Made by a program: the position numbers and the translations under genes. Below are positions 7,124 to 55,608 of a stretch of DNA of 64,000 nucleotides, one piece after another. Location: positions 1-64,000 of the IMG/VR virus record IMGVR_UViG_3300043464_001630; one strand, written 5' to 3'. The notes beneath the pieces were generated by a model. It was given only the letters and a program-made list of their open reading frames with translations, searched no databases and had not been told where the DNA came from. Within the stretch, counting starts at the first letter, position 1; every line of letters starts with the position of its first letter.

Positions 7124-8395
7124 ATGAATCGTAGAGATTTCATTTACACTGGGCTTGTAGGTGGATTAGGATTATCAATGGGTGACATCCTAAAATTACA
7201 AGCAGAATCCTCCTTGACTCCTAAAGCTCAGTCTGTTATTCATATCTTTTTACCGGGGGGTGCGGCATCACATGAAACGTTTGATCCACATCCACTTGCT
7301 CCTTCTGAGTATAGAGGCCCATTAAAAGCTATTCCTACTTCAGTAGTAGGACTACAATTCTCTGAATACTTACAGAAAACGGCAAAAATTGCAGATAAGC
7401 TCACAGTAGTACATTCCATGACACACGGAGAAGCCGCACACGAACGTGGGGTTACTTCTATGTTCACTGGCTATCGTCCATCTCCAGCATTAGAATATCC
7501 ATCATTTGGTTCTGTAATATCTAATCAATTAGGAGATAGAAATAATCTACCAGCATATGTTTGTATTCCACAGAAGATTGGTAACAATGGTAACGATCCA
7601 GCAGATAGTGGGTACTTATCGAAAGCATACGGCCCTTTTAGTTTAGGTTCTGATCCCGCCAACCTTGGATTTAAGGTTCGTGATTTAAATGTAGAAGTAG
7701 GATCAGAACGATTCGAAAGACGTAAATCTATTTTAGACACAGTAGATAGTCATTTTCGTTATTTAGAATCTAGTGATAACTTAGCAGCAATGGATACTTT
7801 CTATCAAAAGGCATTTGATTTAATATCTTCGCCAAAAGCTAAAGAAGCGTTTGCCTTGGATAAAGAACCCCAAGTGATGCGTGAAGCATACGGAATGAAC
7901 CAAGCAGGTCAGAGATTGTTAATGGCTCGTAGATTAGTAGAAGCAGGTGTAAGATTTGTTTCCGTAACTTATGGTGGATGGGATATGCATTCGGGGATTG
8001 CCAACGGAATAGGTAAACAACTACCCTCATTTGATCAGGCTTATGCAACACTCATTAATGATTTAGATCAGAGAGGAATGTTAGATTCAACACTAGTTAT
8101 GATCTCTTCTGAATTTGGTAGAACTCCGAAGATTAACAAAGATGCAGGGCGTGATCATTGGCCTAGAGTATTCTCTGTAGTGTTTGCTGGTGGTGGTTTT
8201 AAACGTGGTTATGTTTACGGTTCTTCTGATGCCACAGGAAGTGATGTAGAAAGTAATCCATTAACAGTAGAAAACCTAGCGGCTACAATGTATAATCAAT
8301 TAGGTATTGATCCAGAAACAAAACTCATGGCGGCAGGTGGAAGACCATCAGCTATTGTAAAAGATGGTACTGTAGTTAAAGATTTGTTAGTATAA
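7124..8395 (+). CDS. DUF1501 family protein (Tat-exported, alkaline phosphatase/sulfatase-like)
   Basis: MNRRDFI Tat motif; IFLPGGAASHETFDP, ARRLVEAGVRFV, GWDMH, SEFGRTP, GRDHWP; likely start ATG 7124 after TAAATA. Confidence 0.9.
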   Translation: MNRRDFIYTGLVGGLGLSMGDILKLQAESSLTPKAQSVIHIFLPGGAASHETFDPHPLAPSEYRGPLKAIPTSVVGLQFSEYLQKTAKIADKLTVVHSMTHGEAAHERGVTSMFTGYRPSPALEYPSFGSVISNQLGDRNNLPAYVCIPQKIGNNGNDPADSGYLSKAYGPFSLGSDPANLGFKVRDLNVEVGSERFERRKSILDTVDSHFRYLESSDNLAAMDTFYQKAFDLISSPKAKEAFALDKEPQVMREAYGMNQAGQRLLMARRLVEAGVRFVSVTYGGWDMHSGIANGIGKQLPSFDQAYATLINDLDQRGMLDSTLVMISSEFGRTPKINKDAGRDHWPRVFSVVFAGGGFKRGYVYGSSDATGSDVESNPLTVENLAATMYNQLGIDPETKLMAAGGRPSAIVKDGTVVKDLLV

Positions 8396-8403
8396 ATATT
8401 CTA

Positions 8404-9162
8404 ATGAATGATGATGATTTAATATTTGAAGCTTATCAAAATATATACGAAAGTGTAACTTTCAGTGTAGATGGGGGTAATCTATTTAATGTCGATAACA
8501 TTAATAATATCAATGATCTTGGTACTGCATTGCTTTATGGAGACAGAGATATAAAGGGAAGTTCTATTACTGAATTTATTAAATCCAATTTATCCGAACA
8601 AGAGTTTGAAGAATGGAAAAATAATAAAATATATGAATTTATAACAATGGATGGTTCAGAATTTGAAGCAGCAGAAGGAAATATAAATTTTTATACAGTT
8701 GGATTTCCGGAAAAAATAATACCTAAAGTTATATCTTTTATTAAGTATTTTATAGGTGAATACAACTTCAAGCTAACTTCAGAACCATATAAGGAGAGAT
8801 CAAATTTACATGAATCTGATGTTATTAGATTCCCAGTTCAAATAGTAACAAACAAGGAATCCGAAAATATACCAGAAGTAAATTTATCTAATAGAAACGC
8901 ATCTATTATTTTAATTAATATATTAAAATATCCCGAATCTGTTTTAGAAGATCATCAAATAAATTCAAGAGAATTATTAATGAAAATAGAAAACATAGAA
9001 GACAACGAAAAAAAGTTAAAATCTTATGTAGTAAAAAACGTAAATGACCGATTTACGGTTCTTGGATTAAGTGAAGAAAGAATTAAACGAATTTTATTTG
9101 ATTTAAAAAAATTAGCTCAATACGCGGTTGATAATCATTTCACTTATATAAAATTCGGTTAA
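8404..9162 (+). CDS. MND-leader hypothetical protein
   Basis: MNDDDLIFEAYQNIYE; TAAATA upstream. Confidence 0.55.
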   Translation: MNDDDLIFEAYQNIYESVTFSVDGGNLFNVDNINNINDLGTALLYGDRDIKGSSITEFIKSNLSEQEFEEWKNNKIYEFITMDGSEFEAAEGNINFYTVGFPEKIIPKVISFIKYFIGEYNFKLTSEPYKERSNLHESDVIRFPVQIVTNKESENIPEVNLSNRNASIILINILKYPESVLEDHQINSRELLMKIENIEDNEKKLKSYVVKNVNDRFTVLGLSEERIKRILFDLKKLAQYAVDNHFTYIKFG

Positions 9163-9170
9163 ATAAAATA

Positions 9171-9695
9171 ATGCTCATCGAACCAACAGAAATTCCAGAT
9201 GTTCTTCTCGTTACTCCTAAGGTCTTTAAAGACTCTCGTGGATATTTTCTAGAATCCTTTAATAATAAGCATTTACCATTTAATTTCGTACAAGATAATC
9301 AATCTTTTTCTTTAAAGAATACTATTAGAGGATTACATTATCAAGTAGTAAAACCACAAGGAAAACTAGTAAGAGTAGTTAAAGGTACTATTTTAGATGT
9401 AGCAGTAGACATTCGTAAAGATTCTCCTACATTCGGAGAATACGTAGCAGTAGAACTGTCTAGTGATAATTTTAAACAATTGTACGTTCCTGAAGGTTTT
9501 GCACACGGATTTTCTGTCTTATCAGAAGAAGCAGAAGTTCTTTACAAAACAACCGACTACTGGTACAAAGAATATGAACGTAGTATTAACTACAGTGATC
9601 CAGAATTAAACATAGATTGGAAAATTGAAGGTGTTCCTATGTTATCTGATAAAGATAGAGATGCAGTGTTATTAAAAGATGCTGAATATTTTTAA
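9171..9695 (+). CDS. rmlC: dTDP-4-dehydrorhamnose 3,5-epimerase
   Basis: DSRGYFLESF, QDNQSFS, RGLHYQ, QGKLVRV, PEGFAHGF. Confidence 0.95.
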   Translation: MLIEPTEIPDVLLVTPKVFKDSRGYFLESFNNKHLPFNFVQDNQSFSLKNTIRGLHYQVVKPQGKLVRVVKGTILDVAVDIRKDSPTFGEYVAVELSSDNFKQLYVPEGFAHGFSVLSEEAEVLYKTTDYWYKEYERSINYSDPELNIDWKIEGVPMLSDKDRDAVLLKDAEYF

Positions 9696-10003
9696 TGAAC
9701 ATTTTCTTTTATTTCTATTATTTCTTTGTTTGTTTTGGTTTAGCTTTCGTGAATGTTCATATTCAACGGGGAAACATACCTACATGGTTTACGCTGTTTG
9801 GTAGTTTACTGATGATGTGTGGTGGATATTTTATGTTGCAACTTTCTACTCTTTCCTTGACCCAGCAGTCAGTTCTGATTACGATTTCCACTTCAATCGG
9901 TTATCAGCTTGGACTAAAATACATGGGCGATCAAATTTCAAATATTCAGTGGTTTGGTATTTTTCTGTCAGTAGTTGCAGCAATCTTAGTGAATCACAAA
10001 TGA
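9695..10003 (+). CDS. Small 4-TM membrane protein (SMR/EamA-like)
   Basis: Four hydrophobic helices; GDQISNIQWFGIFL. Confidence 0.5.
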   Translation: MNIFFYFYYFFVCFGLAFVNVHIQRGNIPTWFTLFGSLLMMCGGYFMLQLSTLSLTQQSVLITISTSIGYQLGLKYMGDQISNIQWFGIFLSVVAAILVNHK

Positions 10004-10098: not shown

Positions 10099-10173
10099 AT
10101 ATTTAAATTTAATTTTAAATAAAAAAGTGTAAAATAATCATAAAAAATTTTACAATTTAGACTAAATAATTAT

Positions 10174-10776
10174 GTGAGACAAAATTATATTAAGATTTCT
10201 AAGCTAGCTAAAGATCTAGGAGTAACTAAACAAACTCTTTGGAACTGGAAATATGCTGGTGAAGTTGATTTTGTTAAAATAGGTGGGTTAAATTGTGTAA
10301 CTAAAGAAACATACAATAATCTATTAGGAATAGAAAACAAGAAAAAAGAATCTGTTGTGATTTATTGTAGGGTTTCTTCGACGGAAAATAAATCTAATAT
10401 AGAAACACAAAAACAAAGATTGTTAAATTATTGCAATGCAAAAGGTTACAAAGTATCTGATGTGATACAAGAGTTTGGTTCTGGTATCAACGATAAGAGA
10501 CCAAAACTCGAAAAATTATTAAAACAGCAAAATTTTACAAAACTAGTAGTAGAACATAAAGATCGTCTAACAAGAGTAGGATTTAATTATATCAATACAC
10601 TGCTAAACTTCAATCATATTGAGATTGAAGTAGTTAATTCTGTTGATGATGATAGAACTGATTTAATACAAGATTTCATATCAATTATTACATCTTATTG
10701 TGCTAGAATTTACGGCAACAGAAGATCAAAAAGAAAAACTGAACAATTAATAAAGGAGCTTGAATCCAATGAGTAG
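10174..10776 (+). CDS. tnpA: IS607 serine recombinase TnpA
   Basis: N-terminal HTH (LGVTKQTLWNW), IYCRVSS, GSGINDKR, VEHKDRLTR, DLIQDFISIITSYCARIYG. Confidence 0.93.
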   Translation: MRQNYIKISKLAKDLGVTKQTLWNWKYAGEVDFVKIGGLNCVTKETYNNLLGIENKKKESVVIYCRVSSTENKSNIETQKQRLLNYCNAKGYKVSDVIQEFGSGINDKRPKLEKLLKQQNFTKLVVEHKDRLTRVGFNYINTLLNFNHIEIEVVNSVDDDRTDLIQDFISIITSYCARIYGNRRSKRKTEQLIKELESNE

Positions 10777-12355
10777 ATGCACAAAGAGTTATTCTTTCTA
10801 CTCGAAAGATCTTAACATAGGCAAATTCAATCTCTTTTTGAAGAAAGCCGAAGCAGTCAGAGATTATAAGAATGCTTTATCTGTCGAAATTTCATCTAAT
10901 CTCTTGAAGTACACTGAAGTTTCTAAGTTTGATTTCCTTAAAATGTTTGGTACGAAAACTAATTATTTGAATCCTAGCTCATTAATGAGAGGAAACGAAA
11001 TACAAAAAGCTGTAGCGGATGTGTTTGAAGCTTATCAAAATAAAATAACACAAATTAAACAAAAAATGTCTTTCTTTGTTCAAAAAGGAAAAGAGGTAGA
11101 ATTTTACAAAAGAAACACAAAAAATAATAAAAAAGGTGATGTTAGAAGTTATGAAATAAAAACTAAAAATACTCCATTGACAAAAACAATCACATTTCTA
11201 TCTCGTTATGGTTCCGAAAACACACTAGATTATGTCAATAAAAGAGCGAATCAAAATGATGACAAACAAGATTTCTATAAGACACTAAAAATACATATTC
11301 AAAAGTTTGGCTTAGAAAGATTGTCGAAACTTGCTTACAGCAAAAGAACACAAGTTCTAAATAAGTATAATTATCCAATCACATTCACCTCTCTATCTTA
11401 TCGTTCTGCTCTTCAGACGAACGATCCTTTGATTCAAAATTCCAAGAACAAAACATTTTCAAATGGAACTATTTCAATACCAAGCTTTAATGGAAAACAT
11501 ATGTTTGTTCCGACTACATTCAATGTAAAACATCATGGTCATTTGAATCAATATAAATCAAAAGAGTATATAATTTGTATCGAACAAAAGCGAAAAAGAA
11601 TCAGACTGATTACTACAAAAGAAACAGAAGAAACTATTTCTCCAGAAGGAATAAATTATTTAGGTGTTGACACCAACGTCAAACATAATCTATTTGCTAC
11701 TTCAGATGGAATGAATATTGACATGGACAGAGATTTGTTTCATGGTTATATTGCTTTTCTAAAGAAATACCAAGACAAGAAAGAACATACTTCTGGAGAA
11801 GATCAACAATTTGAACTATGGCAAGAACGTGTTCAGTGTATGCTCAAAAAGAAAGCTAGAGAGTTAGTTGATGTGGCTATAGCTTCTGGTAAGAATCATA
11901 TCATCATGGAAGATCTTGGTAACTTTGGTAAATCTTACACTAAATCAGAAGAGTTCGAAGGATTCAAATATTCTAGATTAACACGATTACTCAATCTTTC
12001 TTCTCTAAACAAAATTGTTAAAGGCATTTGTAAGAAGCTTGGTGTTAGACTAACTCTCATTCCTTCTCATTATACATCTCAGTGGTGCTTTGACTGTGGA
12101 CACATAGACAAAGCTAACAGAACCACCCAAGAAATTTTCCAATGTGTTTGTTGCAATGTAACAGCAAATTCAGACTTTCATTCTTCACGAGCCATCCTTA
12201 GGATAGGTTCTTCAGACGTTCTGAAGAGCAATATGCTCGTGATGGATAAATCATTCGATTGGATTCCTAAGAAACTCTCAAAAGGTTTCATAAGAAAACA
12301 ATTGGAAGAAATAATTCCTAAAACAACTTTTCAGTTGAATTGTCAAACTTTATAG
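10760..12355 (+). CDS. tnpB: TnpB RNA-guided RuvC nuclease (long, 531 aa)
   Basis: LGVD (RuvC-I), IMEDL (RuvC-II), YTSQWCFDCGH...CVCC Zn ribbon, NSD (RuvC-III). Confidence 0.88.
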   Translation: MNPMSRCTKSYSFYSKDLNIGKFNLFLKKAEAVRDYKNALSVEISSNLLKYTEVSKFDFLKMFGTKTNYLNPSSLMRGNEIQKAVADVFEAYQNKITQIKQKMSFFVQKGKEVEFYKRNTKNNKKGDVRSYEIKTKNTPLTKTITFLSRYGSENTLDYVNKRANQNDDKQDFYKTLKIHIQKFGLERLSKLAYSKRTQVLNKYNYPITFTSLSYRSALQTNDPLIQNSKNKTFSNGTISIPSFNGKHMFVPTTFNVKHHGHLNQYKSKEYIICIEQKRKRIRLITTKETEETISPEGINYLGVDTNVKHNLFATSDGMNIDMDRDLFHGYIAFLKKYQDKKEHTSGEDQQFELWQERVQCMLKKKARELVDVAIASGKNHIIMEDLGNFGKSYTKSEEFEGFKYSRLTRLLNLSSLNKIVKGICKKLGVRLTLIPSHYTSQWCFDCGHIDKANRTTQEIFQCVCCNVTANSDFHSSRAILRIGSSDVLKSNMLVMDKSFDWIPKKLSKGFIRKQLEEIIPKTTFQLNCQTL

Positions 12356-12646: not shown

Positions 12647-13357
12647 ATGATTAAATTCTCAAAAGAGATTATGGAATTGGCATTATCAATGATGCCGCGT
12701 TGTGATCTCGTTAAGGTTATGTGCTCAATGGGAATAGACAGTCTTGCTGTTTCTCATTTCTTCGAAAAGAAAATTAAAGACAAATACGGTTCTTGGGGCA
12801 TAATGCACTTCAATCATGAACAGAGACAACAAAATTATTTGATGGAAGAAAGTTATTGTAATTTTGGTTATAACTATGGTATTCCTAGATATTCTCCGGT
12901 TCGTTTAAAATCCGGAGGCTATTATGGCAGTTCTCTAGAACCAACCGAAGATAACTTCAGGGAAGCTAGACTTAATTATATTAAAAGAAGTCAGCATATT
13001 AATACAATCTTCATTACTGCTCATCATTTAGACGATGCCGCAGAAAGCTATATGCTGAATGTTTTGCGGGGTAAAGAAGGATTCTTACCCATTCCATTCA
13101 TTACAGAAGTAGGACGTAACTTAATTGTTCATCCTTTTCTTTTTACGAAGAAGAAAGATTTCAGGGAATATGCAGAAAAGAACAATCTCATGAAATATGT
13201 CGTAGAGGATGAGACTAATAAGGTAACTAAAGGAAGCAGAAGAAACTTTATTAGAAACGAGATTATGCCTCTTATTCAAAGAGAGAAGATGGGACTCGAC
13301 ACAATCGTTAAAAAGAAAATGAAAGAACGATTGATGTTGGAAATTATAAAATCTTGA
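12647..13357 (+). CDS. tilS: tRNA(Ile)-lysidine synthetase
   Basis: PP-loop SMGIDS, HFNH, TAHHLDDAAES, EDETN, RNFIRNEIMP. Confidence 0.85.
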   Translation: MIKFSKEIMELALSMMPRCDLVKVMCSMGIDSLAVSHFFEKKIKDKYGSWGIMHFNHEQRQQNYLMEESYCNFGYNYGIPRYSPVRLKSGGYYGSSLEPTEDNFREARLNYIKRSQHINTIFITAHHLDDAAESYMLNVLRGKEGFLPIPFITEVGRNLIVHPFLFTKKKDFREYAEKNNLMKYVVEDETNKVTKGSRRNFIRNEIMPLIQREKMGLDTIVKKKMKERLMLEIIKS

Positions 13358-15528: not shown

Positions 15529-16404
15529 ATGTTTAAGAACCGTTTGGGTGTTTGTTGTATTACTCTTGGAGAAAAGTCTAACTTCAAGACACTTCAGTTG
15601 AATCGCACAAAAGACTTGTCTAATAAACAAGACAAGATCTTTGATGTTTATCGGCATAATCTAGCTGAACTTTGTAAAGTTCTAAAGTATCTGACTAGTA
15701 AGAATATTCGTCACTATCGAATTTCTTCTAACATGTTTCCTTTGTCTGATCATCCAGACTTCGAACAGTATTGGAATCTGTTCTGTTCTAAAGAAGTGTT
15801 TTGGGTGTATGCCAAAAAAGTAGTCAAAGAATACCTAGACAACGGCGGACGACTGTCTACTCATCCTGATCAGTTCTGTATCATTTCTTCGTTTCGTCAT
15901 GATGTGAATATTAACGGTGTTCGTAATCTAGAGTATCATGCCAAGATGTTTGATATGCTTGGTATTCCCCAGTCACACTTCTGTCCTATTAACATTCATG
16001 TTAGTAATGGCAACAATCCAGAAATCGCCATCGAACAAACGAATCATAATCTGACCAGACTGTCGGACAGTGTCATGAAACGTTTGGTGTTCGAGACAGA
16101 AGACAAGTCATTCTGGAAGTATCAGAATCTCCATAAGCACTTTCCAAACATTCCTATCACACTTGATTATCATCATCGTTTGATTAATAACGATGGAGAA
16201 TCTGAAGAAACTGCACACGAAGTTTGTGCGAGTACATGGAAAGATGTAGTTCCTTTGTTTCATCATAGTGAAGGCAAGGAACATCGTTTGGATCGTGCTC
16301 ATTCTGATTATATCAATAATCTACCACAATGTGCGGTTGGTGTAGATATCGAGATCGAAGCAAAGCAAAAAGATCTTGCAGTTCTTAAACTGATGTTTTC
16401 GTGA
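15529..16404 (+). CDS. uvsE: UV damage endonuclease
   Basis: YRISSNMFP, STHPDQF, LVFETED, LDYHH, HHSEG, HSDY, EAKQKD. Confidence 0.92.
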   Translation: MFKNRLGVCCITLGEKSNFKTLQLNRTKDLSNKQDKIFDVYRHNLAELCKVLKYLTSKNIRHYRISSNMFPLSDHPDFEQYWNLFCSKEVFWVYAKKVVKEYLDNGGRLSTHPDQFCIISSFRHDVNINGVRNLEYHAKMFDMLGIPQSHFCPINIHVSNGNNPEIAIEQTNHNLTRLSDSVMKRLVFETEDKSFWKYQNLHKHFPNIPITLDYHHRLINNDGESEETAHEVCASTWKDVVPLFHHSEGKEHRLDRAHSDYINNLPQCAVGVDIEIEAKQKDLAVLKLMFS

Positions 16405-17068: not shown

Positions 17069-17998
17069 ATGAACTATTCATTTGGTTGTGAGCCAGACAG
17101 TCACGATGAACGTGATTATCGTTTAAAGTCTGTTTTAGATCCTGTCTTTAAAGATTCTGTGGATCTAACTCACGATCCACAAACCAGATGGTGGATTGGT
17201 GAAGCGCACGATCAAGGTACATTGGGATCATGTACAGCATTTGCCACAAATGACATGGTTCGTTATGTTCGTTATAAGACGAAACTATCTAGTTGGCCTA
17301 CTTCACAGTTGTTTACTTATTATGCAACTAGAAAATTACGCGGATCAACTGAGGAAGATTCTGGAGCTACTGCCAGAGAAGCACTAAAAGCTACTGTTGA
17401 TTATGGTGTTACTAAGAACGAATTATGGCCGTATGACATAGCTAAGTTCAAAGAAGAACCACCTAAAGAAGCATGGGTTGATGCAGAAAAGCATCAGTCT
17501 CTTTCTTATTTTCGTTTAGATCAAACTGAAGATGATATAATTGGATGTTTATCCGATGGATATCCATTTATCTTTGGAATGAAGATATATCAATCTTTCT
17601 TTAATTATAAAGAATCAGCTATGTTTGATGTAGTAATGCCATTTCCAAAACCCACAAAAGAAAAGTATTATGGTGGGCATTGTATGTTAGCAGTAGGTTA
17701 CTACAAACAAAACGGAAAATACATTATTATAATCAGAAATTCTTGGGGAGTTGAGTTTTGTAGCTCTGGATATATCCATGCTCCTCTGGATTTGTTATTA
17801 GATTCTAATTTCTGTTTTGATTTGTGGACGCTTCGTACTTCAGAAGACGAAAGACCAAAACAGGAACCGATCAAGCCAACAGTCTTTGTAGAACCACCAC
17901 TACCTCCAGAACCTGTTGTTCCGTTGTGGAAAAGTAAGAACTTCTATTTCTTGCTTGGATTTGGAGTTCTTGTGCTTCTCTTTTTGTTGTTGAAGTAA
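17069..17998 (+). CDS. Papain-like C1A cysteine protease with C-terminal membrane anchor
   Basis: QGTLGSCT, GGHCM, IRNSWG; Pro-rich linker then hydrophobic C-terminus. Confidence 0.88.
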   Translation: MNYSFGCEPDSHDERDYRLKSVLDPVFKDSVDLTHDPQTRWWIGEAHDQGTLGSCTAFATNDMVRYVRYKTKLSSWPTSQLFTYYATRKLRGSTEEDSGATAREALKATVDYGVTKNELWPYDIAKFKEEPPKEAWVDAEKHQSLSYFRLDQTEDDIIGCLSDGYPFIFGMKIYQSFFNYKESAMFDVVMPFPKPTKEKYYGGHCMLAVGYYKQNGKYIIIIRNSWGVEFCSSGYIHAPLDLLLDSNFCFDLWTLRTSEDERPKQEPIKPTVFVEPPLPPEPVVPLWKSKNFYFLLGFGVLVLLFLLLK

Positions 17999-42465: not shown

Positions 42466-45400
42466 TGTTCCATGTGGAACATTCTCCAACGGAGAGAAGA
42501 GAGGATTCTGGGGAGAGTATAGTGGTTATGTTTAGAATGAATATGTTCTTATGCACATAATGCATAATGATTATTAGATATGCTTATAATGCATAAGAAC
42601 TATTAGATATGCACATAATACATGTGTGTTATTAGGTATGCTTAAATTGCATATTAGTTTCGCTTATCTGGGGTTTTCTCGTGGTTTAGGTCAGACCCTC
42701 CCCCCACCTCAAGGTTAATAAGAATCCTCTACTAATGGAAGGTTTATTTTCACTTTTTTTGGGTTTGTTTAGAAAAGGTCAGACCCTCCCCCCGTACCTC
42801 TAGGTTAGTATGCGATCCAGTATTTTAGCAAGAAAAAAGAAAAATAAAAATAGTGCTAAAGAAAAAAGATTTTCAGTTTTTCCTAAAGAGTTTTTTTCAA
42901 ATGCCTATTAAAAGGAGCCATGCAATTTACAAATTCCATTTGCTTAGAGTTAGCTACCCTTGCCTCTCTCAATCAGTTAGAGAAGCTCGCCGAGCGCCTG
43001 ACTGAATTGCAGCCCTTAGTTAAACAGGGACGCGGAACATGGGGGGAGAATATTGAAAAGATGTTGGCTTTTCTCTCTGACCGAAAGCCCCGCTTCTCCA
43101 TCTTTGCCAAGGGAAACGGAAAACTGCCGTTTGCTGCGTTTTCTGTGCTTCCGCTTGTTTCCTGCCCCGGTTCTGGTGCTTGTAAAAACTGGTGCTATTC
43201 TCTGAAAGCATGGCGATATCCAGCGGCTTTCTTTCGCCAGTTGCAGAACCTAATTCTTTTGATGTCCCCAGAGGGGCGGAAAACTGTCGCAGAGGCATGG
43301 AACAAGCTCCGCAAGGGGGCGCATGTTCGGTTGTACGTTGATGGGGACATTCACTCTCTTGAGATTCTAGAATATTGGCAGAACCTTTGTCGCCAGCGTT
43401 CAGATTTGCAGGTTTATGGGTATTCTAAAAGCTGGGGAATATTCTTGCGTTTCGATGGAGAATGGGCGTCGAACTATACTCTCAACCTTTCAAGCGGTTC
43501 GAAGTTTGTAAACAGCCCTAAAGTAAAAGAACAAATTTCCGCCCTTCCGATTGTGCGGGGTGAGTTTGTGGCTGTTCCCGTGGCTTCGAAGGCTCCAAAG
43601 CGCAACCTTAAAACGGGTCAGCCTCTGAACCCCGCAGCATGGCAGTCTCATAGGTTAGAGGTTCTAGCCGCTGCAAAGAAGCTAGGAATGGGTAAAGTGT
43701 TTGTTTGTCCGGGTTTGTGTGGATTCTGTGCAAACGGAAAACACGCTTGTGGCAATCGTGCATTTAACGGAATTCCGATTGTGATTGGAATCCATTAAAA
43801 TAGTTCTAAAGAATCCTCTATTCTTTGCCGATTAGTATATACCGGAAGGTTCGATCCCTTCCGGTTCACTCAGAAACCCAAAAAACAGCCATGATGCTCA
43901 AAGCCAAAAAATCGAAAAAGTCACAAAAAATTGTAATTGCATTCCCGATTGCAAACACTAATGGTCAAATGGTTTCGATTCATACAACCGTTGGAAAGTA
44001 TTCTTTTATTCTTGATTACTGGGCTGGTGATGCCGTCGAAAACGCTCTCAAGAGAATCGAGGAAGAGAATGTCACCGGAATCGGTTTTACGACAGCAAAC
44101 GGAACACCGATTCAAGTAAGGTTGCTAGATTAGCAGGTTTTAGAGAATCCCCTACTCTTTACGAAGGGCGGGGGATTCTCCGTTGTTCCACATGGAACAT
44201 TATAGGAACAGATAATAGGTTAAACCCTCCCGTCCTTCCTCTAGGTTAATAAGGATTCTCTATTACTACAACAGAAAAGAAAAAAAAGTTTCTGCTAAAG
44301 TTTTCTAGAAACCTGTTACTGATTCTTTGTTCCACATGGAACATTCCAGAATCTAGTGAGTATACAAACCCTCCCGTCACACCTATAGGTTAATAGAGAA
44401 TCCTCTATTCTTACAACCTTTTTCTTTTTTATTTTTCTGCTAAAGTCTTTCACCTTTCTTGCCTATTAGTAGTTATGCCGAAACATTCCTCTGACATTGC
44501 TTACGAGTTGACAAACCTCTTGAAGTTTGAAAGCATGAAAAGCGTTGGCGAATTTAGTGAAGCCTACGTCATCGGATACTTGAGCAGTATCTTGAAGAAT
44601 CTTGCAAAGTATCCTGAGGTTCAGCGTGAACTGGAAAAAGAAGTAGAAAGAATAAAAAAGTACTAAAGACGCTCTGCTGAAAAACCGACTACTCTGTATG
44701 ACTGTAAAACTGATCAACGCCGCAATCAAACACCTCAACCTCGAAATCATCAAAGGAAGCGGATACGTTTATTTTCTTGACTTGACTACTGGATATCAGG
44801 TGGGCGACTCTGTGCATATTGCATACCTCAATCATGTCAGCTTGGATCGGTGGATCGAAGAAGCCGAAGGTGCAAGAAAAGACGAAGAAGTAAAAAAGTT
44901 CTAAAGAATCCTCTACAAATACCGACTACTATATACCAGAAGGTCCAATCCCTTCTGGTTCACTCAGAAACCTTAGTACATTATGGAAAAACTCACCTTG
45001 GAAGAAATCACCCGCATTGCTGAAAAACTGGGAGTCAAGTTGGACGGGAATCCAACGCCAGCGCAGAAAGCCGAAATCGCAAACATACTTGTCACCCTTT
45101 TGGAAGTTGAAGCGAAACTGAAAAAGAACTAAAGTCTCTCCGAGAAAAACCGATTACTATATACCGGAAGGTTCCAGTCCTTCCGGTTCTCAACCCAAAA
45201 ACCAAACTACATTCTATGATCACCAAAAACGAAAACGGCACACTCTCAATCGGCGACATTCAAATCGTTTCTTCTTATAACAAAGAAACAAAGCAGCATA
45301 CCTTCAATCTGCTTAAAGCGGGTTGTGTTCCCGTTCAGCATATCGGGAATCACCTGACGCTCCGAAACAATATCACGAAACTGGTGGAACAAGTAGAAGC

Positions 45401-46291
45401 TACCTACGTTGAGGAAGTGGCCTCAGAAGTGGCCTCAGAATCGTTCAGCGAGACTATTCTGGACATTACAGAATTCGTTCAGATTCCAGTCGACGACAAC
45501 GCCCCCACTTCTGAGTCAGAAGATTATAACCTCTTCAAGGATTATCTAAAGAAATTCTCCGAAGCTACCGGAGAGGAACGGGAGAAATTTGCGGAGATTG
45601 CCAGTCAGATTCTCCTTGGCATGAACATTCAAGCGGTGTAAAGAATCCCCCCGCCACACTCACTAGAGACTCCCCCCTATCTAGTGAGTGTGGTATCTTT
45701 TTCACTTCTCTATTAAAAATGAATTTATAGCATATTCGTTTTTATATCATCGAGTCGTGAGTCAACCAAAAAAATCCCGCTCTCCCCTAAAAACGCTAGG
45801 CTCCTACACACAAGCGTAGGACTCCCACAAAAATAATACGGGGGCGCAAATAGTTCTAAAGAATCCTCTACAGTTGCCGATAGATATAGTGTCAGCGTAG
45901 TAAACCTTAAATTCACTTCTTATGTTCCAAGCAAACCTTGTCAAAGCTGTCTCTCACTACCCGCTCTCCAAGTTGATCCCTGATTCTATCGGAAACGAAA
46001 AAGACGAAGGTCTCTATGACTATTTTATCGACAGTCTTTCCGAAGGACGTATTGTGGGAGCAGGAGCTACTTTTATGCTTCTCGAACCCAAACTGTTCAG
46101 GAAGCACCTAATGAGTGCTCTAGAATTCGGCGAATTCAATCTCGCCGCTCTTGAGATTGAAGATATCCTAAGAACAACTGACACTCTGATTCTCCGCGAC
46201 ATTCACGTTTCATTGGCAGAGTAAAGAAGAAAGAAGTAGTCCCCTATGCTCTACGGAGTGTAGGGGATTCTCTATTGTTCCACATGGAACA
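42466..46291. repeat. Four parS-like 16-bp palindromes TGTTCCAYRTGGAACA (42466, 44184, 44328, 46276)
   Basis: Read directly; one mismatch from the parS palindrome TGTTCCACGTGGAACA. Confidence 0.7.
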
Positions 46292-46670
46292 TTCGGGAAT
46301 AGTAAGATACACTATAAGCATATCTTATATGCATTATGATGTATAAGCATAACTTCTAATAATAATATATAAGAACCTCCGCCCTCCCCCCTCCCTTTCA
46401 GTATATCACACTTGTCAAGCCCCAGTTTTGAGAGACTGGAATAGGCCAAACCCTCCCCCCGCCTCTAGGTTAATAAAGAAACAAGTGGTTTGTGAAGGTT
46501 TATTTTCACTTTTTTTCTGAGCTTTTACAATTCCAGACAGACCCTCCCTTCCGCCTCTAGGTTAGTTTGAAAATAATAGTTCTGTCAATCCCTTTTTTTG
46601 CAGAAAAAAAGAAAAGGTCATACCCTCCCGTCACGCCGATAGGTTAGTCCGCAAAACAGGGGGCAGTCAA
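42695..46670 (-). promoter_or_regulatory. Seven minus-strand units: A-tract, TTGACA-like, N17-18, TAACCT, AGAGG-like, N3-5, GGGAGGGT
   Basis: + strand ACCCTCCC...AGGTTA at 42695, 42783, 44224, 44368, 46450, 46541, 46622. Confidence 0.7.
42920..43798 (+). CDS. Gp88-like Cys-rich protein
   Basis: GNGKL, SCPGSGACKNWCY, RLYVDGDI, YGYSK, CPG.CG.C. Confidence 0.7.
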   Translation: MQFTNSICLELATLASLNQLEKLAERLTELQPLVKQGRGTWGENIEKMLAFLSDRKPRFSIFAKGNGKLPFAAFSVLPLVSCPGSGACKNWCYSLKAWRYPAAFFRQLQNLILLMSPEGRKTVAEAWNKLRKGAHVRLYVDGDIHSLEILEYWQNLCRQRSDLQVYGYSKSWGIFLRFDGEWASNYTLNLSSGSKFVNSPKVKEQISALPIVRGEFVAVPVASKAPKRNLKTGQPLNPAAWQSHRLEVLAAAKKLGMGKVFVCPGLCGFCANGKHACGNRAFNGIPIVIGIH

Positions 46671-47740
46671 ATTTATTTTCATTTATTTTTAACCTGTGTA
46701 AATCGTTGAGAATCATTAACTTACGAAGTTTTCGCGTTTAAAGGCGATTCTAGGGGGGTTTCTACCGTGTCAGCTATGATCACCCTACCGGCAATAGAAA
46801 GGGGATCAGAACGGGATTCTTGGCGATTCCAGAGTGGGTTCCTGTATTAGGTTCCGGTGAGCTTTTTCCCTACCGGCGAACCCTACCGACGAACCGTTGA
46901 AAACTTTTTTGCTAGTGTAACTTTCGGAAATATAGGGACTTATAAAATTATTTAAAAAAAGAGCTTAAGGGATTTGCCATTTCGTTCGAATACTAGGGTA
47001 GGTCAGCGAGATTCCGCTGGCTTGGCCGCGAGAGGCAAGGGAAGTCTCCGCTAGGGCTGGAACCTATGGTTACCAGAGTTGATGGTGCTCTCTGAAGAGG
47101 CTCGCAGAGGAATGTCCGATAGAATACGGGACGGTTCCGGTTGCTCAGGCTAGTACCCTGAGTGGCTACCAGCGAAGGTACACAGTATTTGTGGGGTTTG
47201 TCGCCAGCGTTTTACGGTTACCGAGATAGGGAATCCGAGAATAGAGCGTTGGCAATCAAACACTAATTAAGATTATGAAAATAACAAATGCCGTTTCCGC
47301 CGCTAATTCTAGTGATTTTGTTTATTCGGAAAATGTTAGGTACGTTTTTATCTGTAAAATGATCGAATCCCGAATCTCTTCACGACTTTTTCTGATTGAT
47401 GATTCGAAAGAACAAAAGTTACAGGATATAATTAATGGCGATTGGCGCAAAACCTTGGGATGTATTGATGAGCAGATTAAAAATCTAGAAAAAGAGCGGA
47501 TTCCTTTGGAGAAATGGCTCCGCGACAACGGAGCAAACGACGACGATTTAGACCATAGTTTGTGGTGCGACGACACAGATTGGAGAGCATGGGTAAATGA
47601 GGATTAGGTATTGTGTTCAGCCCCTTACACAATTCGGTGTAGGGGGCGCGGTTATAAGTGTTTTGCTTTCAGCCTTTTGTCAGTCCCGCTGTAGGGCACT
47701 GAGTTCACAAAGGGTTGAATAACAGTACACTAATTAAATT

Positions 47741-49273
47741 ATGACCCCATCAAAGTATCAAACCGCTGCAATCAACTGGATGACAAGCGGAAGCGGAAAC
47801 GCAGTTATTAGCGCAGTAGCAGGAAGCGGAAAGACGACTCTTTTGCTCATGATGCTGAAAGAGTTGTTCAAAGAAGGAAAGTGTCCCTCAGTGGCTTGCC
47901 TAGTGTTTGCGAAGAAAAACCAAGTGGAAATGGACTATAAGCTCAAAAGGGAAGGGATTCCCGCCGAGTCTTATACGGTTCACTCGCTTTGCCTCAGGGC
48001 ATATAGGAAGTTTGTTCCTAACTTCAAACTCGAAGGAAGGAAAGTGAGACTAATCCTCGAAGAAAACCTATCGTCTGAGGACTTTAGTCTCTATGCAACC
48101 GCTTGCGAAAAACTGGTTAAGTTCGCAAAGGACGACGGGGCCGGAATTTTTTGGCCCATTGCGGATGCTGCTCAATGGCAGCGCCTTATGGCGCATCATG
48201 ATGTCGAACTAGAGAACGATGCCACGATGGATCGGGCGATTGAGATTTGTCAGAAAACCTTAGAAGCGAACAATAAAGAGAAAATCTTTATAGATTTCTC
48301 TGATATGATTTATCTTACTCTGTTGAACGGGTACACTTTACCGAAGTTTGACTGGGTACTGGTGGACGAAGCGCAGGATTTAAGTCCCCTTAGACAAGCG
48401 GTTTGCTTTGCTTTGAAGGGAGAAAACACTCGCTTCGTTTTCCCCGGCGATAGAATCCAAGCAGTGTTTGGGTTCACTGGCGCGGATGCGGAGTCTCTGG
48501 ACAATATCAAATCCGCTTACAACGCTACAGAGCTACCGTTGTCAGTGTGTTACCGCTGTTCAAGCTCAGTGGTGAACCACGCAAAGCAATGGAATCCCGT
48601 AATTGAATCAGCACCAAACGCTGAAACGGGAAGCGTTACCGAAATGCCCTACACCGCGCTGACGGAAAAGCCTGAGTCTCTTAACCTTTCGTACAAAGAC
48701 GCGATCCTTTGCCGGACTAATGCGCCTTTGATGCGCACCGCGTTTTCTCTGATCAAAAAGGGAATCCCGTGCAGAATTGAGGGGCGGGACATCGCTCAGG
48801 GGCTCATTAACGTAATCGGAAAATGGAAAGTTAAGACACTGGACGCTCTCGAAAACCGCCTTTCCGATTACTTGGATCGCGAAACGCAAAAGGCTCAGAC
48901 TAAGGGTAATGAGGCTTTGGTAGGCGTCATAACCGATAAGGTGGATTGCATTAGGGCTTGCATGGAAAAGTGCTACCTCGAAGGCAAGACCCGCGTTGAC
49001 GACCTCAAAGCATTGATTGATAGCATGTTCTCGAACGCGGACGATAAGACAACCCGCCGCGACTTGCTCACCCTTTGCTCTGTCCACAAATCAAAGGGGC
49101 TGGAATGGGAACGAGTCTTTCTACTTGGGCGTCAAGACTTTATGCCTTCCAAGTGGGCAAAGAAAGACTGGATGAAGGTTCAGGAAACTAACCTTATCTA
49201 TGTAGCTATCACCCGCGCCAAGAGAGACTTAGTCGAAGTCACCGGAGTGTCTGAGTACCTCAAAGGCAAGTAG
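47741..49273 (+). CDS. UvrD/Rep-like superfamily 1 helicase
   Basis: AVAGSGKT, VDEAQD, GDRIQAVFGFTGA, YRC, ILCRTN, VHKSKGLEW, YVAITRAK. Confidence 0.92.
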   Translation: MTPSKYQTAAINWMTSGSGNAVISAVAGSGKTTLLLMMLKELFKEGKCPSVACLVFAKKNQVEMDYKLKREGIPAESYTVHSLCLRAYRKFVPNFKLEGRKVRLILEENLSSEDFSLYATACEKLVKFAKDDGAGIFWPIADAAQWQRLMAHHDVELENDATMDRAIEICQKTLEANNKEKIFIDFSDMIYLTLLNGYTLPKFDWVLVDEAQDLSPLRQAVCFALKGENTRFVFPGDRIQAVFGFTGADAESLDNIKSAYNATELPLSVCYRCSSSVVNHAKQWNPVIESAPNAETGSVTEMPYTALTEKPESLNLSYKDAILCRTNAPLMRTAFSLIKKGIPCRIEGRDIAQGLINVIGKWKVKTLDALENRLSDYLDRETQKAQTKGNEALVGVITDKVDCIRACMEKCYLEGKTRVDDLKALIDSMFSNADDKTTRRDLLTLCSVHKSKGLEWERVFLLGRQDFMPSKWAKKDWMKVQETNLIYVAITRAKRDLVEVTGVSEYLKGK

Positions 49274-50160
49274 CCTTCAGAGTTGCGGCTCAGGGGAGTT
49301 CAATCCTCTCCTGAGCCCTTCGCGTTTAAATGCCCTTTAAAAGGCTCCACCCCCTTCGTCAGTATCTCCACCGCCCCCCGCCCCCTATAGGCCATTAGAA
49401 ACCCCCGTAGCGTTCCGCCATTAGGGGATCATGATTGTCCCCTCAGTTCCGTTCACACAATAAACTCACGTTGGTAATAGATTCGCGTTCACATTACACA
49501 CTCAACCCACTCTAATAAACTCATGAGAGACACACACTTCCCTAACTTTGTTCACCTTATCCTTTCCAATAATCCTTCAGCCTATGCCAAGCAAGTGCTT
49601 ATTAGAGAGTCTAGTCTGTACTACAGAGACTTCTATTCCTCTTGCTACGTCCTGACTCTGGACGAAAAAGACTTCGCCATTAACAGAGCGGTGGAAAGGT
49701 TCTCTGAGTATGTAAACCTTTCGAAATCAACGCTAGACTCACTGGACGCGGTTAAGACTGCTGTCGCTCAGGTGCTTCAAGAATCTTATACTGAGTCTAT
49801 TCAAAGAACTTTCAAAGCTAAGGGGTTGGCTATGGTATAGGCGACCTCTCCTAATACGGGGCTCCCTTTTTCGGAAGGGGGTTCCCGTTTCAGGAAGCGT
49901 GCCACCTAGCGAAAAAGAAAGTTTTATTTTCTACTAAAGTTTTTGGGAGAACGGGGCTCTTCTATGCAGGTCGAGCATTTTAATTTGCGGCTTGCGTAAG
50001 TTGCATGACTGGTCGGGTGAGGGGGCATTGCCAAAATTTTTTTTGCAAATTTCTGGAAATTTTACTAAAGGCGATTTTTTAATATACAATCCTCTATTAT
50101 TTCCAGATCTTTTTTTGATATTTTAATTTTATATTTTTGTTGAGTAAAATATACGAAATT

Positions 50161-50541: not shown

Positions 50542-50583
50542 AATTTTATTTAACCTTTAAACTATAATAATTTTATTTAACCT

Positions 50584-53275: not shown

Positions 53276-53587
53276 ATGATGGTATTTTATTGGATAAGCA
53301 GTATCGGATTTTGTTTAGTAGTTAAACACGGAAGTATATTAGAAAGTTTCCGTGAAAAGACTTCTGAGCTTTTTCCTTTTCTAAAAAAACTATACAAGTG
53401 TTGTTTATGTATGGGATTCTGGGTAGGAATGAGTATGATACCCTTTCTTTACGTTATCGAAGGATTTGGTATTGAACTCGTATGGTATCCTTTCTCCACT
53501 TCTGCTCTGTGTTGGATAGCCGATAGCGTGTTAAGTTTAATTCATTCCTTAACTATTTTAGTAGATAAGAAAATCGACGAAGAATAG
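53276..53587 (+). CDS. DUF1360-like membrane protein
   Basis: TM segments and LYKCCLCMGFWVG. Confidence 0.5.
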   Translation: MMVFYWISSIGFCLVVKHGSILESFREKTSELFPFLKKLYKCCLCMGFWVGMSMIPFLYVIEGFGIELVWYPFSTSALCWIADSVLSLIHSLTILVDKKIDEE

Positions 53588-54243
53588 AGAATTACTTTTT
53601 CTTCTTTTTCTCGACTTCTTCTGCGGAATTTGTTGACAAAAGATGATCAAGTAATTCTCCGAATTTATTTTTTGTTTCTTGATTGAACTTTCCGTTATCA
53701 ATTTCGTCTCTGAGAAACTCTATGAGTAAATTTTTCTTATCTTCGTTAGAAATTTCTTGATCTTTCGGAAACATTACTTTACTATCAAAGTTGTTGGGGC
53801 TGGTGTCGGTGGCACCTGTGGTTTTTCCGTGTCCCGGACCACTAAAAGAACCAGAAAATTGTGAAGAATTTTTAATATCTTCTACTGGGCTGTTATACTC
53901 TCTGAGTAATACTTTATCTCGATAAACATCTCCCAGATGATAGTTACTAATATTCATACGATTATTTAGCTAAATATCTCTATGAAGTTTGACGATATAG
54001 TAAAACAGATATTAGAAGATTATAATTATTCTTACAACTCTGGAAATTACCAAACAGGAACAGTACAAGCAAGTAGTAAAGAAGGTATCTTAAATACACT
54101 ACGACCATTTGATGGCTCGATGGGTGGAGCTAATCAACCAATTGGCCGTGGTATGTTTCCCCAGAAGAAAGATTACACGACCAAGAACAAGAACAAACTC
54201 AAGAAACTCGAAAGAAAACTAAAAAACAAAAATAAATAAGATT

Positions 54244-55608
54244 ATGGCTGACTGTGGAAATCATAACAACGAATACAGAACCCGTAGAGATTTCCTGAAT
54301 AATTTCGGATGGGGTATAGGAGGATTATCTTTAGCATCTATCTTGGGTGTAGATCCCGTAACTGCTGAAGCAGTTTCTCCTCTTGCCGCTAAAGCTTCAC
54401 ACTTTCCAGTTAAAGCAAAAGCAGTTATTCAACTATTTGCTTCTGGTGCTCCGTCTCATGTAGATACTTTTGATTATAAACCAGAACTTCAAAAGCGTGA
54501 TGGACAAAAAGGAGATTATGGTAATCTTCTCGCTTCTCCGTTCAACTTTCCCCAGTTTGGAAAATCTGGTTTACATATATCTGAAGTTTGGTCGAAATTA
54601 GGCCAACATGCGGATAATATGGCAATCATAAATTCCATGCAAACAGACGTTCCTGATCATGGAATTGCTGCAAAAATGTTTAATACAGGTTCTACACAAC
54701 TTCCAAAACCAAGTCTGGGTAGTTGGTTAACCTATGGTTTAGGTTCCTTGAACCAAAACATGCCAGCTTTTATATCTTTAAACGGTGCGCCAGAATGGAG
54801 ACAGTGTGCATTCTTGCCGGGGATGTTTCAAGGCTGTAATGTGCAATACAGAACTGGTATGAGAGCAGAAGAGATTCTTTCTAATATCCGAAGTGAATTC
54901 TCTTCTTTAGATCGCCAAAGACGCCAAATTGACTTTTCTAAGTTTTTGAATTATGATCACATGAGTAAGTTGCAAAAAGATACGCAACTAGAAGCCAGAA
55001 TTGAATCTTTCGAAACCGCATTTAAAATGCAAACCGAAGCAACAGATGCTTTTGATGTCTCTAAAGAACCAGAGAACATTAAAGATCTATATGGTCGTAA
55101 CGAAGAAGGTAATAAAATGATAGTGGCTCGTCGTTTGGTTGAGCGTGGAGTACGTTTTGTACAGGTTAATGTGGGTGGCTATGATCATCATAGTGATATC
55201 AAAACCGCCATGACGAATACCACAATGCGTTACGACACAGCTTTTAGTGGATTACTAACTGATCTTAAACAACGAGGGTTGTTAGATTCTACACTAGTTA
55301 TTTGGGGTGGTGAATTTGGACGTACTGTGACCGCTGGAGGAGGTGCTGGTGCTCCGGGTCGTGATCATAATGGTAAAGCATTTTCAGTATGGATGGCAGG
55401 AGGAAACATTAAAGGCGGACAGCGTTACGGAGAAACCGACGAAACCGGCGGAAGATCGGTTAAAGATATTGTACATATTCATGATTTACATGCGACGATT
55501 CTTCATTTAATGGGATTTGATCACACGAAATTAACTTACAATTACAACGGAAGAGAGTTCCGTCTCACTGATAACTTCGGAAACGTTATAAAAGAACTTA
55601 TTAGTTAA
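54244..55608 (+). CDS. DUF1501 family protein (second copy, Tat-exported)
   Basis: TRRDFL; GAPSHVDTFDYKP, ARRLVERGVRFVQ, GEFGRT, GRDHN, DLHATILHLMGFDH. Confidence 0.92.
   Translation: MADCGNHNNEYRTRRDFLNNFGWGIGGLSLASILGVDPVTAEAVSPLAAKASHFPVKAKAVIQLFASGAPSHVDTFDYKPELQKRDGQKGDYGNLLASPFNFPQFGKSGLHISEVWSKLGQHADNMAIINSMQTDVPDHGIAAKMFNTGSTQLPKPSLGSWLTYGLGSLNQNMPAFISLNGAPEWRQCAFLPGMFQGCNVQYRTGMRAEEILSNIRSEFSSLDRQRRQIDFSKFLNYDHMSKLQKDTQLEARIESFETAFKMQTEATDAFDVSKEPENIKDLYGRNEEGNKMIVARRLVERGVRFVQVNVGGYDHHSDIKTAMTNTTMRYDTAFSGLLTDLKQRGLLDSTLVIWGGEFGRTVTAGGGAGAPGRDHNGKAFSVWMAGGNIKGGQRYGETDETGGRSVKDIVHIHDLHATILHLMGFDHTKLTYNYNGREFRLTDNFGNVIKELIS

Follow-up and report, generated by a model that had tools for sequence, protein, structure and literature searches.

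The first 64 kb (the 64,000-nucleotide window analysed here) of a closed 236,391-bp T4-like phage genome from lake metagenomes encodes two intact proteins of the uncharacterised family DUF1501, which is typical of Planctomycetes and Verrucomicrobia, and a small, putatively secreted relative of their usual partner protein. DUF1501 copy 1 (7124-8395, plus strand; 423 aa) matches PF07394 at E 2.9e-114 with 382.7 bits, and copy 2 (54244-55608, plus strand; 454 aa) at E 7.8e-132 with 440.5 bits, against a curated cutoff of 27, and both cover profile positions 1-390 of 390. They are about 31% identical to each other and belong to different module types. Although the frame of copy 1 opens at GTG 7100, ATG 7124 is the likely start, because relatives are 419-426 aa long and the promoter-like motif sits at the canonical distance from 7124. 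Just upstream of this motif, a GC-poor hairpin followed by a T-run (7080-7110, plus strand), read directly from the sequence, looks like a terminator-like boundary of the transcription unit.

Both N-termini carry a twin-arginine motif (NRRDFI in copy 1, about residues 1-27; TRRDFL in copy 2, about residues 1-43), followed by a hydrophobic stretch and an AxA-like site. The two arginines are invariant or nearly so in alignments with phage and cellular homologues, but this leader is inferred from reading the motif, and no NCBIfam model of any kind matched at E 0.05. Residues conserved across the family, including the WD-H and GRDH motifs as candidate metal ligands, are retained in both copies; the columns invariant across phage and cellular sequences include D287/H289 and D344/H345 in copy 1, and D314/H316 and R373/H375 in copy 2.

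The third gene (21742-22323, minus strand) encodes a 193-aa protein with a GTG start and a Sec-type leader of about residues 1-21. It is a real, conserved gene, found in 36 clusters at 41-100% identity. Its Pfam match to PSCyt2/DUF1549 (PF07583) is below threshold, with 17.9 bits against a cutoff of 29.8, and covers only profile positions 17-80 of 209. Even so, all 17 family members hit PSCyt2 (best E 2e-6), a family HMM searched against 6362 ORFs hit only PSCyt2-bearing proteins and always at the start of that domain, and profile-profile comparison by hhalign gave 96.6% probability and E 5e-10 over 50 columns. Residues 20-70 are homologous to the start of PSCyt2. The rest is all-helical and resembles the C-terminal part of DUF1553 proteins in its structural model only; PSD1/DUF1553 (PF07587) gave no sequence match (hhalign probability 2%). 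In Foldseek searches the top hits were DUF1553 and DUF1549 proteins, and most of the best-ranked hits among AlphaFold DB clusters were C-terminal parts of DUF1553 proteins, with probability up to 1.0 but E 0.1-1 and TM-scores of only 0.43-0.45.

TAAATA ends exactly 5 nt before the start codon of all three genes, at 7113-7118 (plus strand) for copy 1, at 54233-54238 (plus strand, within AATAAATA) for copy 2, and at 22329-22334 (minus strand) for the small protein. Genome-wide, 53 genes have this exact spacing against 0-2 at other distances, so it is not chance, and TAAATA-N5-start occurs in about 80 genes. All five motif-bearing large genes that could be annotated are virion genes, and portal, sheath and tail-fibre genes are included, whereas ribonucleotide reductase and the UvrD helicase lack the motif at this spacing. 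A T4-type late promoter is a TATAAATA-like element at -10, read by a phage late sigma factor; the assignment of the elements found here to this type is inferred from their core, their fixed distance and their association with virion genes.

Residence in the phage genome and conservation

The element is a phage. The assembly has a 146-bp terminal overlap, a gp23-type capsid gene is present at E 2e-88, and portal, sheath and tail-fibre genes are found. Whether the genes form an assembly chimera with host DNA had been named beforehand as a condition that would overturn the observation, and they do not. Several independent assemblies show the same context, including one of 240,510 bp in which copy 2 is likewise followed by the ribonucleotide reductase subunits, and lake metagenomes from many separate studies hold words of the region. 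Third-codon GC of the two DUF1501 genes is 22-27%, close to the phage mean of 27.6% and far from the 78-84% of cellular homologues.

Each DUF1501 copy has relatives in more than 120 clusters at 73-99% identity, several on contigs of 197-247 kb, and dN/dS is about 0.04 (0.035-0.046 for copy 2). In the one genome-wide comparison made, against a related complete phage (G309), the two copies rank first and second of 75 reciprocal best hits, with 75.8% and 73.7% identity against a median of 38.8% and 60.9% for the capsid protein. This conservation could partly reflect gene exchange among phages after they diverged rather than selection alone, and the changing positions of the two genes fit such mobility. 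A further complete relative chosen by its capsid gene rather than by DUF1501 (G319) also has two DUF1501 genes, and DUF1501 occurs in several other groups of large phage contigs. No GenBank phage record has a homologue, and no report of phage-borne DUF1501 was found.

The observation made in the preliminary description, namely two intact DUF1501 genes of different subtypes and a signal-peptide protein with a DUF1549-like motif, each with TAAATA just upstream and phage-like codons, is confirmed.

Origin, partner genes and predicted fold

In the careful tree, the phage copy 2 clade nests within freshwater Verrucomicrobiota (Opitutaceae and others) with supports of 97-100, and the best cellular identity is 50-54%. 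Copy 2 is of the two-gene-module type, in which a PSCyt1-PSCyt2-PSD1 partner lies directly downstream in its nearest cellular relatives and in some related phages. Copy 1 is sister to the cellular orthologues that head the four-gene module described by Kamneva et al. 2012 (PMC3542564); it is 57-62% identical to orthologues in Verrucomicrobiota and Planctomycetota, whose downstream genes are a PPC protein, a Big_2-PSCyt2-PSD1 protein and a PSCyt1-WD40 protein.

Relatives normally keep the two DUF1501 genes adjacent, often beside a full PSCyt2-PSD1 partner. A 990-aa PSCyt1-PSCyt2-PSD1 protein follows copy 2 in some phages, a 595-aa PSCyt2-PSD1 protein lies between the two DUF1501 genes in G319, and adjacency of such a partner was found in the related phages L004, L096, L103 and G319. 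The phage studied here has none of the large partners; no PSD1 match exists anywhere in its 236-kb genome, and the only PSCyt2 match is the 17-bit hit in the 193-aa ORF. If DUF1501 needs a partner, it must be that of the host or the 193-aa protein.

The model of copy 2 has an alkaline-phosphatase-superfamily fold. Foldseek against the PDB gave 105 matches at E <= 0.001, of which the 50 best listed are sulfatases, LtaS or annotated superfamily members; the nearest solved structures are LtaS, S1 sulfatases and sulfamidase (E 2e-6 to 1e-4, probability 1.0), although TM-scores are only 0.3-0.39 and identity is 9-13%. Weak profile hits to the C-terminal metal-site region fall in the same superfamily, but no significant sequence match to any solved structure was found. 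As read from the sequences, the proteins lack the Cys/Ser-x-Pro-x-Arg formylglycine motif of classical sulfatases.

Interpretation and comparison with known systems

The reading considered best, with a probability of roughly 0.6, is that these are long-resident auxiliary genes of a widespread clade of freshwater T4-like phages of roughly 190-250 kb. In this view, an ancestor captured DUF1501 genes, and in some lineages their PSCyt2-PSD1 partners, from the periplasmic DUF1501/PSCyt/PSD1 modules of PVC bacteria, copy 2 coming from a Verrucomicrobiota-like donor and copy 1 from the conserved four-gene module. The two proteins would be metal-dependent enzymes with a sulfatase/LtaS-like fold, transcribed from T4-type late promoters together with the virion genes, folded in the cytoplasm and exported by the host Tat pathway to the periplasm. 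There they would supplement or replace the host's own DUF1501 enzymes during late infection, working either with host-encoded PSCyt/PSD1 partners or with the miniature partner-like protein of the phage. The most likely chemistry would be cleavage of a phosphate or sulfate ester on an envelope or periplasmic substrate, to supply nutrients or to modify the envelope, but this is a guess from the fold, since no biochemical function is known for any DUF1501 protein. The analysis establishes phage residence, origin, intactness, strong purifying selection, a shared promoter class and, from the model, the fold class, whereas the export route, timing, substrate and any partnership with the small protein or with host proteins are inferred. 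Late timing in particular rests on the motif rather than on expression data; metatranscriptome contigs matched only relatives, at 80-95% likeness, and could derive from DNA.

The interpretation offered in the preliminary description is supported only in part. The evidence supports that the element is a phage, that the genes are phage-resident and functional, that they derive from the PVC modules, that all three sit behind the motif shared with virion genes, and that the small ORF has real, though only partial, similarity to DUF1549 and DUF1553. On the other hand, it is not shown that the three proteins form a complex. That the host is a PVC bacterium is also not shown and rests on the gene tree alone, and a GC gap of about 30 points to the closest donors and the complete absence of tRNA genes argue against those high-GC lineages being the present host. 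Envelope remodelling, superinfection exclusion or a virion part is likewise not shown as the function, and a Tat leader argues against a virion component. The preliminary description also missed the usual adjacency of the two genes in related phages, the full-length partner carried by many relatives, the top rank of the pair in conservation, and the occurrence of DUF1501 in other groups of large phage contigs.

Among alternatives, it is possible but unlikely that the three proteins form a self-contained periplasmic complex, in which the 193-aa protein would be the minimal docking module of PSCyt2-PSD1 proteins, binding one or both DUF1501 enzymes in place of the large host-type partner. Besides its homology to the start of PSCyt2 and the resemblance of the rest of its model to DUF1553 proteins, the small protein is predicted to be secreted, shares the promoter class, and co-occurs with the DUF1501 pair in the genomes G000, G309 and G308 and in contigs of 230 kb and 242 kb, and partner size varies across the clade (990, 595 and 193 aa). 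However, multimer prediction gave no support, although this is not evidence against binding, and the gene is not adjacent to DUF1501 in any genome examined. It also coexists with a full 998-aa partner in G308 and is absent from G319, so that it is neither a simple substitute nor universal.

Still more doubtful is a role outside the infected cell or at lysis, in which late-made soluble enzymes, released at lysis or helping to breach the envelope, would strip phosphate or sulfate groups from host surface polysaccharide so that progeny can escape or adsorb. The late-type promoter and the predicted sulfatase/LtaS-like fold are in its favor, as are neighbouring accessory genes for sugar-nucleotide and glycosyltransferase functions, namely RmlC at 9171-9695 and, in relatives, WbqC, DegT and an epimerase. 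Against it, close orthology to periplasmic host module enzymes and retention of the same leader suggest that the cellular role is kept, there is no similarity to known lysins or depolymerases, and two distinct subtypes are kept in parallel, as in host modules. Misassembled host DNA or recently captured passengers without function, which might be suspected because the family is otherwise typical of PVC cells and no GenBank phage record has a homologue, are already refuted by the codon composition, independent assemblies, closed genome, separate phage clades 50-62% identical to the nearest cellular proteins, low dN/dS and conservation ranks.

DUF1501 and its PSCyt/PSD1 partners are among the most expanded gene families in Planctomycetes and Verrucomicrobia, and have had no assigned function since their description in 2004-2012. 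Phages usually keep only host-type genes that pay off during infection, and the rank of the two proteins between two complete phage genomes, together with partner proteins of 990, 595 and perhaps 193 residues, argues that the activity is important and delimits which parts of the system may be dispensable. The phages thus offer a small, tractable version of the system with small, AT-rich, easily synthesised genes for biochemistry, a gene-tree lead to a verrucomicrobial host or donor, and a flag for an abundant, uncultured lineage of freshwater T4-like phages, whose capsid is only 32% identical to any cultured phage. A bolder and improbable reading, though not excluded, is that a large clade of lake phages has reduced this machinery to its essentials, two Tat-exported enzymes and a 170-residue mature protein keeping only the docking elements of the ~1000-residue partner. 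These would form a working periplasmic complex or plug into host partners, with an activity so important to phage fitness that the enzymes evolve more slowly than the capsid. If so, the phage set would be the minimal experimental system for finding the function of a family that makes up a sizeable share of many planctomycete and verrucomicrobial genomes.

Three known systems are closest. First, alkaline-phosphatase superfamily enzymes (type I sulfatases, sulfamidase and LtaS) share the overall predicted fold and the C-terminal metal-site region, with the low TM-scores and the missing formylglycine motif described above. Second, T4-like cyanophages carry host-derived auxiliary metabolic genes such as psbA, pstS and phoA, which are also host-type genes kept under purifying selection in accessory regions and presumed to sustain or boost a host function during infection; here, however, the function of the family is unknown, the products are predicted to be exported, the genes use the late-type motif rather than early or host promoters, and they are more conserved than the capsid protein. 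Third, the DUF1501/PSCyt1-PSCyt2-PSD1 modules of Planctomycetes, Verrucomicrobia and Lentisphaerae (Kamneva et al. 2012, PMC3542564; He et al. 2017, PMC5615132) share with the phage full-length DUF1501 proteins with twin-arginine motifs, the orthology of copy 1 to the head of the four-gene module, the two-gene type of copy 2, and, in related phages, the partners. The phage differs from them in its codon composition and late-type promoters, in lacking a large partner, in bringing the two subtypes together in one phage lineage, and in having a 193-aa protein with only the first ~50 residues of PSCyt2 detectable, a family that the homologue search found only on contigs of unnamed origin, several of them the same large phage contigs.

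Genome context and the promoter motif

The 236,391-bp IMG/VR virus record opened by the 64-kb window has an overall GC content of 33.7%, and its first 146 bases recur at the far end, so the assembly closes on itself. Within the window, GC rises to 42-48% at 44000-50000 around the UvrD-type helicase gene (47741-49273). The genome carries a T4 gp23-type major capsid gene (PF07068, E 2e-88) and also encodes a portal, tail sheath, tail fibres and a Hoc-like protein. Although a 319-aa ORF at 5596-6555 (-), with a weak N-terminal C2H2 zinc-finger match and lying divergent from DUF1501 copy 1 across a 568-nt gap, raised the idea of a giant virus, a search of the genome found no NCLDV capsid and this idea was dropped. 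The capsid protein is at most 32% identical to any of 50,697 GenBank phages, the nearest being T4-like cyanophages, and GenBank phages gave no DNA match to the first 25 kb and no tblastn match to DUF1501 copy 2. Near-identical sequence occurs in lake-water and freshwater metagenomes from many studies. The element is therefore an uncultured, deeply branching freshwater T4-like phage. Accessory genes in the window (9171-9695, 12647-13357, 15529-16404, 17069-17998 and 59880-61948) include an RmlC-type dTDP-sugar epimerase, a PP-loop ATPase, the UvdE UV endonuclease, a papain-family peptidase, a PAS-domain protein, a ClpP protease and ThyX, several of which have orthologues near the DUF1501 genes in related phages. 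A 531-aa ORF at 10760-12355 (+) carries a Cas12f1-like TNB domain (TnpB-type, E 3e-9), which suggests a transposon-derived RNA-guided nuclease.

TAAATA ends exactly 5 nt before the start codon of both DUF1501 genes and of the gene for the small secreted protein. Across 319 ORFs of the genome, called with a simple greedy script, 53 have nTAAATA at this exact spacing, 16 at 6 nt and 9 at 7 nt, about 80 in all, whereas other distances show 0-2; examples in the window lie at 3059, 8404, 17069, 34448 and 50584(-), and the C2H2 zinc-finger ORF has the motif 7 nt upstream. The 100 nt upstream of genes hold 130 copies where 28 would be expected. Ten large motif-bearing genes were scanned against PHROGs; five matched nothing, and the five that could be named are the portal, the tail sheath, a tail-fibre/collar protein, a tail/Hoc-like protein and one protein matching only PHROGs of unknown function. 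Ribonucleotide reductase and the UvrD helicase lack the motif at this spacing, and the capsid gene is an exception in that its TAAATA lies about 41 nt upstream. This pattern fits a T4-type late promoter. By T4 geometry, in which the last A is at -6, transcription would start at the A of the ATG and these late mRNAs would be leaderless, but this last step is inference. Four lake metatranscriptomes held only contigs of relatives, at 80-95% likeness over copy 2, and because the runs were picked through that very gene, this is no proof of transcription.

Two DUF1501 genes and a small secreted protein

The preliminary description of two intact DUF1501 genes of different subtypes and a DUF1549-like secreted protein behind TAAATA motifs holds. 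Both DUF1501 genes are intact and full-length (PF07394, E 2.9e-114 for copy 1 and 7.8e-132 for copy 2), and the two copies are about 31% identical. Copy 1 starts most plausibly at ATG 7124 and not at GTG 7100, since relatives are 419-426 aa and the promoter-like motif sits at the canonical distance from 7124. Both proteins begin with a twin-arginine motif (NRRDFI and TRRDFL), a hydrophobic stretch and an AxA-like site, and the arginines are conserved in alignments that include cellular homologues. However, no NCBIfam model matched any of the five proteins tried, and export by Tat is inferred from the motif alone. Neighbours of the two genes (8404-9162, 53982-54239 and 55657-56001) have no signal peptides and no Pfam domains, so they are not partners.

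The ORF at 21742-22323 (minus strand) is a real gene, with 36 database clusters at 41-100% identity, a Sec-type leader and orthologues in two other near-complete genomes of the clade. Its Pfam hit to PSCyt2/DUF1549 is below threshold (17.9 bits), but the similarity is genuine for residues 20-70. All 17 family members tested hit PSCyt2 (best E 2e-6), and a family HMM searched against 6362 ORFs from all fetched loci hit only PSCyt2-bearing proteins, always at the start of that domain. A profile-profile comparison with 14 PSCyt/PSD1 proteins gives 96.6% probability and E 5e-10 over 50 columns. The AlphaFold model (pLDDT 79.9, all helical) was compared with 2.3 million AlphaFold DB clusters, and its best-ranked matches are mostly DUF1553 and DUF1549 proteins, mainly their C-terminal parts, although E-values are 0.1-1 and TM-scores only 0.43-0.45. 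The C-terminal two thirds give no significant sequence match; the last 120 residues compared with a PSCyt/PSD1 profile reach a probability of 2%, with the alignment falling on the GWSLK...LS.TY motif of PSD1. This protein is read as a drastically shortened relative of PSCyt2-PSD1 proteins, of which only the first motif is demonstrably homologous.

An assembly chimera with host DNA, named beforehand as an outcome that would overturn the preliminary description, is excluded, and the genes are not mere passengers. An independent 240,510-bp assembly has copy 2 (95% identical) in the same context, followed by the two ribonucleotide reductase subunits. GC3 of the two DUF1501 genes is 22% and 27%, against a phage mean of 27.6% and 78-84% in the closest cellular homologues, and dN/dS against close relatives is 0.035-0.046 where dS is still measurable. 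When all ORFs of this genome were compared with those of G309, a complete 227,352-bp T4-like relative, 75 reciprocal best hits were obtained with a median identity of 38.8%; copy 2 (75.8%) and copy 1 (73.7%) rank first and second, ahead of the capsid protein at 60.9%, although this ranking comes from a single genome pair. G319, a complete 224,703-bp genome picked through its capsid gene (72% identical) rather than through DUF1501, also has two DUF1501 genes.

Origin and distribution of the genes

For copy 2, the nearest sequences outside the phage cluster are 58% and 51% identical, and the best matches among 185,579 species genomes are freshwater Verrucomicrobiales and Opitutaceae MAGs at 50-54%. 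In a careful tree (38 sequences, LG+C20), the phage clade nests inside these Verrucomicrobiota sequences with supports of 97-100. A 9.2-kb contig of 67.6% GC binned as Planctomycetota (JANPIY010000768.1) carries a DUF1501 that is sister (support 100/99) to one phage copy inside the otherwise viral clade, which may reflect phage-to-cell transfer or an unsampled donor lineage. In the nearest cellular loci the PSCyt-PSD1 gene lies directly downstream of DUF1501, as it does in the phages that have it. For copy 1, orthologues at 57-62% identity occur in both Verrucomicrobiota and Planctomycetota. These cellular orthologues are themselves only 55-64% identical across phyla, apart from one within-phylum pair at 69%, so the subtype evolves slowly everywhere. 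In Singulisphaera, the copy 1 orthologue heads the cluster DUF1501, PPC-domain protein, Big_2-PSCyt2-PSD1 and PSCyt1-WD40, and in a Verrucomicrobiales MAG the first two genes are seen before the contig ends; this is the four-gene module described by Kamneva et al. (2012; PMC3542564). The phage copy 1 sequences form one clade, sister to these orthologues, in a large tree made by a quick search.

In most related contigs the two DUF1501 genes are adjacent or a few kb apart, although contigs found through DUF1501 are an ascertainment-biased sample; in this phage they are 46 kb apart. Partner content varies across the clade. A 990-aa PSCyt1-PSCyt2-PSD1 protein follows copy 2 in five related contigs (L004, L096, L103, L104 and L116), and in L004 a 520-aa protein with a zincin (HExxH-type) signature sits between the two DUF1501 genes (L004:9296-10858). 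In G319 (locus L285, G319:C1:73493-76636), a partner of intermediate size, a 595-aa PSCyt2-PSD1 protein without the cytochrome domain, lies between the two DUF1501 genes together with a weak FMN-reductase-like ORF. No large partner exists in the present genome, in which searches for homologues of the cellular partners (PPC protein, Big_2-PSCyt2-PSD1 and PSCyt1-WD40) and of the zincin-like protein also found none, and no partner of the 990-aa type was found in G309. The 193-aa protein encoded at 21742-22323 (-) is present in this genome, in G309 and in G308, another genome of the clade, where it coexists with a 998-aa partner, but it was not found in G319 and is never next to a DUF1501 gene. 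DUF1501 genes at 31-50% identity to copy 2, mostly with a PSCyt-PSD1 neighbour, also occur on other low-GC (31-43%) viral contigs of IMG/VR, 150-195 kb long (L122-L161). Most of these lack a gp23-type capsid match, one has a gp23 capsid gene and two have a weak terminase match. Phage-borne DUF1501 is therefore wider than this one clade, and other phage groups hold the module too.

Predicted function, host and comparison with known systems

The model of copy 2 (pLDDT 77) is closest to LtaS, S1-family sulfatases, sulfamidase and other alkaline-phosphatase-superfamily enzymes (E 2e-6 to 1e-4), although TM-scores are only 0.3-0.39. A sequence search of solved structures found nothing with copy 2 alone, and a profile gave only weak hits in the same families. 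The residues invariant in the family alignments are present in both phage copies, while the Cys/Ser-x-Pro-x-Arg motif of classical sulfatases is absent from both sequences. Conserved positions include D/H pairs and a Thr near the SM-T motif. The best explanation is that these proteins are metal-dependent ester hydrolases or transferases, which would be made late, exported folded through Tat, and act in the periplasm as replacements or supplements for the host's own module enzymes, with the host's large partners or the phage's small protein as possible companions. The intactness, phage residence and conservation of the genes come directly from the sequence comparisons, whereas expression timing, localisation and activity are inferred. 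A complex prediction with mature copy 1, mature copy 2 and the mature small protein scored 0.00, which gives no verdict either way and is not used as evidence, so any physical link between the small protein and DUF1501 rests on homology and co-occurrence only. The preliminary interpretation, that the genes point to the host group and that the phage domesticated a periplasmic complex for late infection, is only partly supported.

The gene tree points to Verrucomicrobiota as the donor of copy 2 but does not prove the present host. The phage is about 30 GC points below the closest donor genes, and has no tRNA gene at all in its 236 kb (the window plus L162-L170). Shine-Dalgarno-like 4-mers upstream of genes are no more frequent than in shuffled sequence (7.5% against 7.6%), and leaders are A-rich. 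The absence of tRNA genes and of a Shine-Dalgarno signal is unusual for a large T4-like phage. These features suit a low-GC host with Shine-Dalgarno-independent initiation better than the high-GC Opitutaceae MAGs. Neither the Bacteroidetes-type -7 promoter motif nor the T4 MotA box is enriched upstream of genes, so they give no clue to the host.

In the literature that could be searched in full text, no paper links DUF1501, DUF1553 or PSCyt to phages or viruses, the single hit being a 61-aa weak CDD match in a Pseudomonas phage. The cellular modules themselves are already known, although without an assigned function. What is described here is a host-derived auxiliary module in a T4-like phage that is unusual in four ways: it comes from an uncharacterised, PVC-typical family; two subtypes are kept together; it outranks the capsid in conservation in the one genome pair compared; and it comes with a shrinking series of partner proteins.
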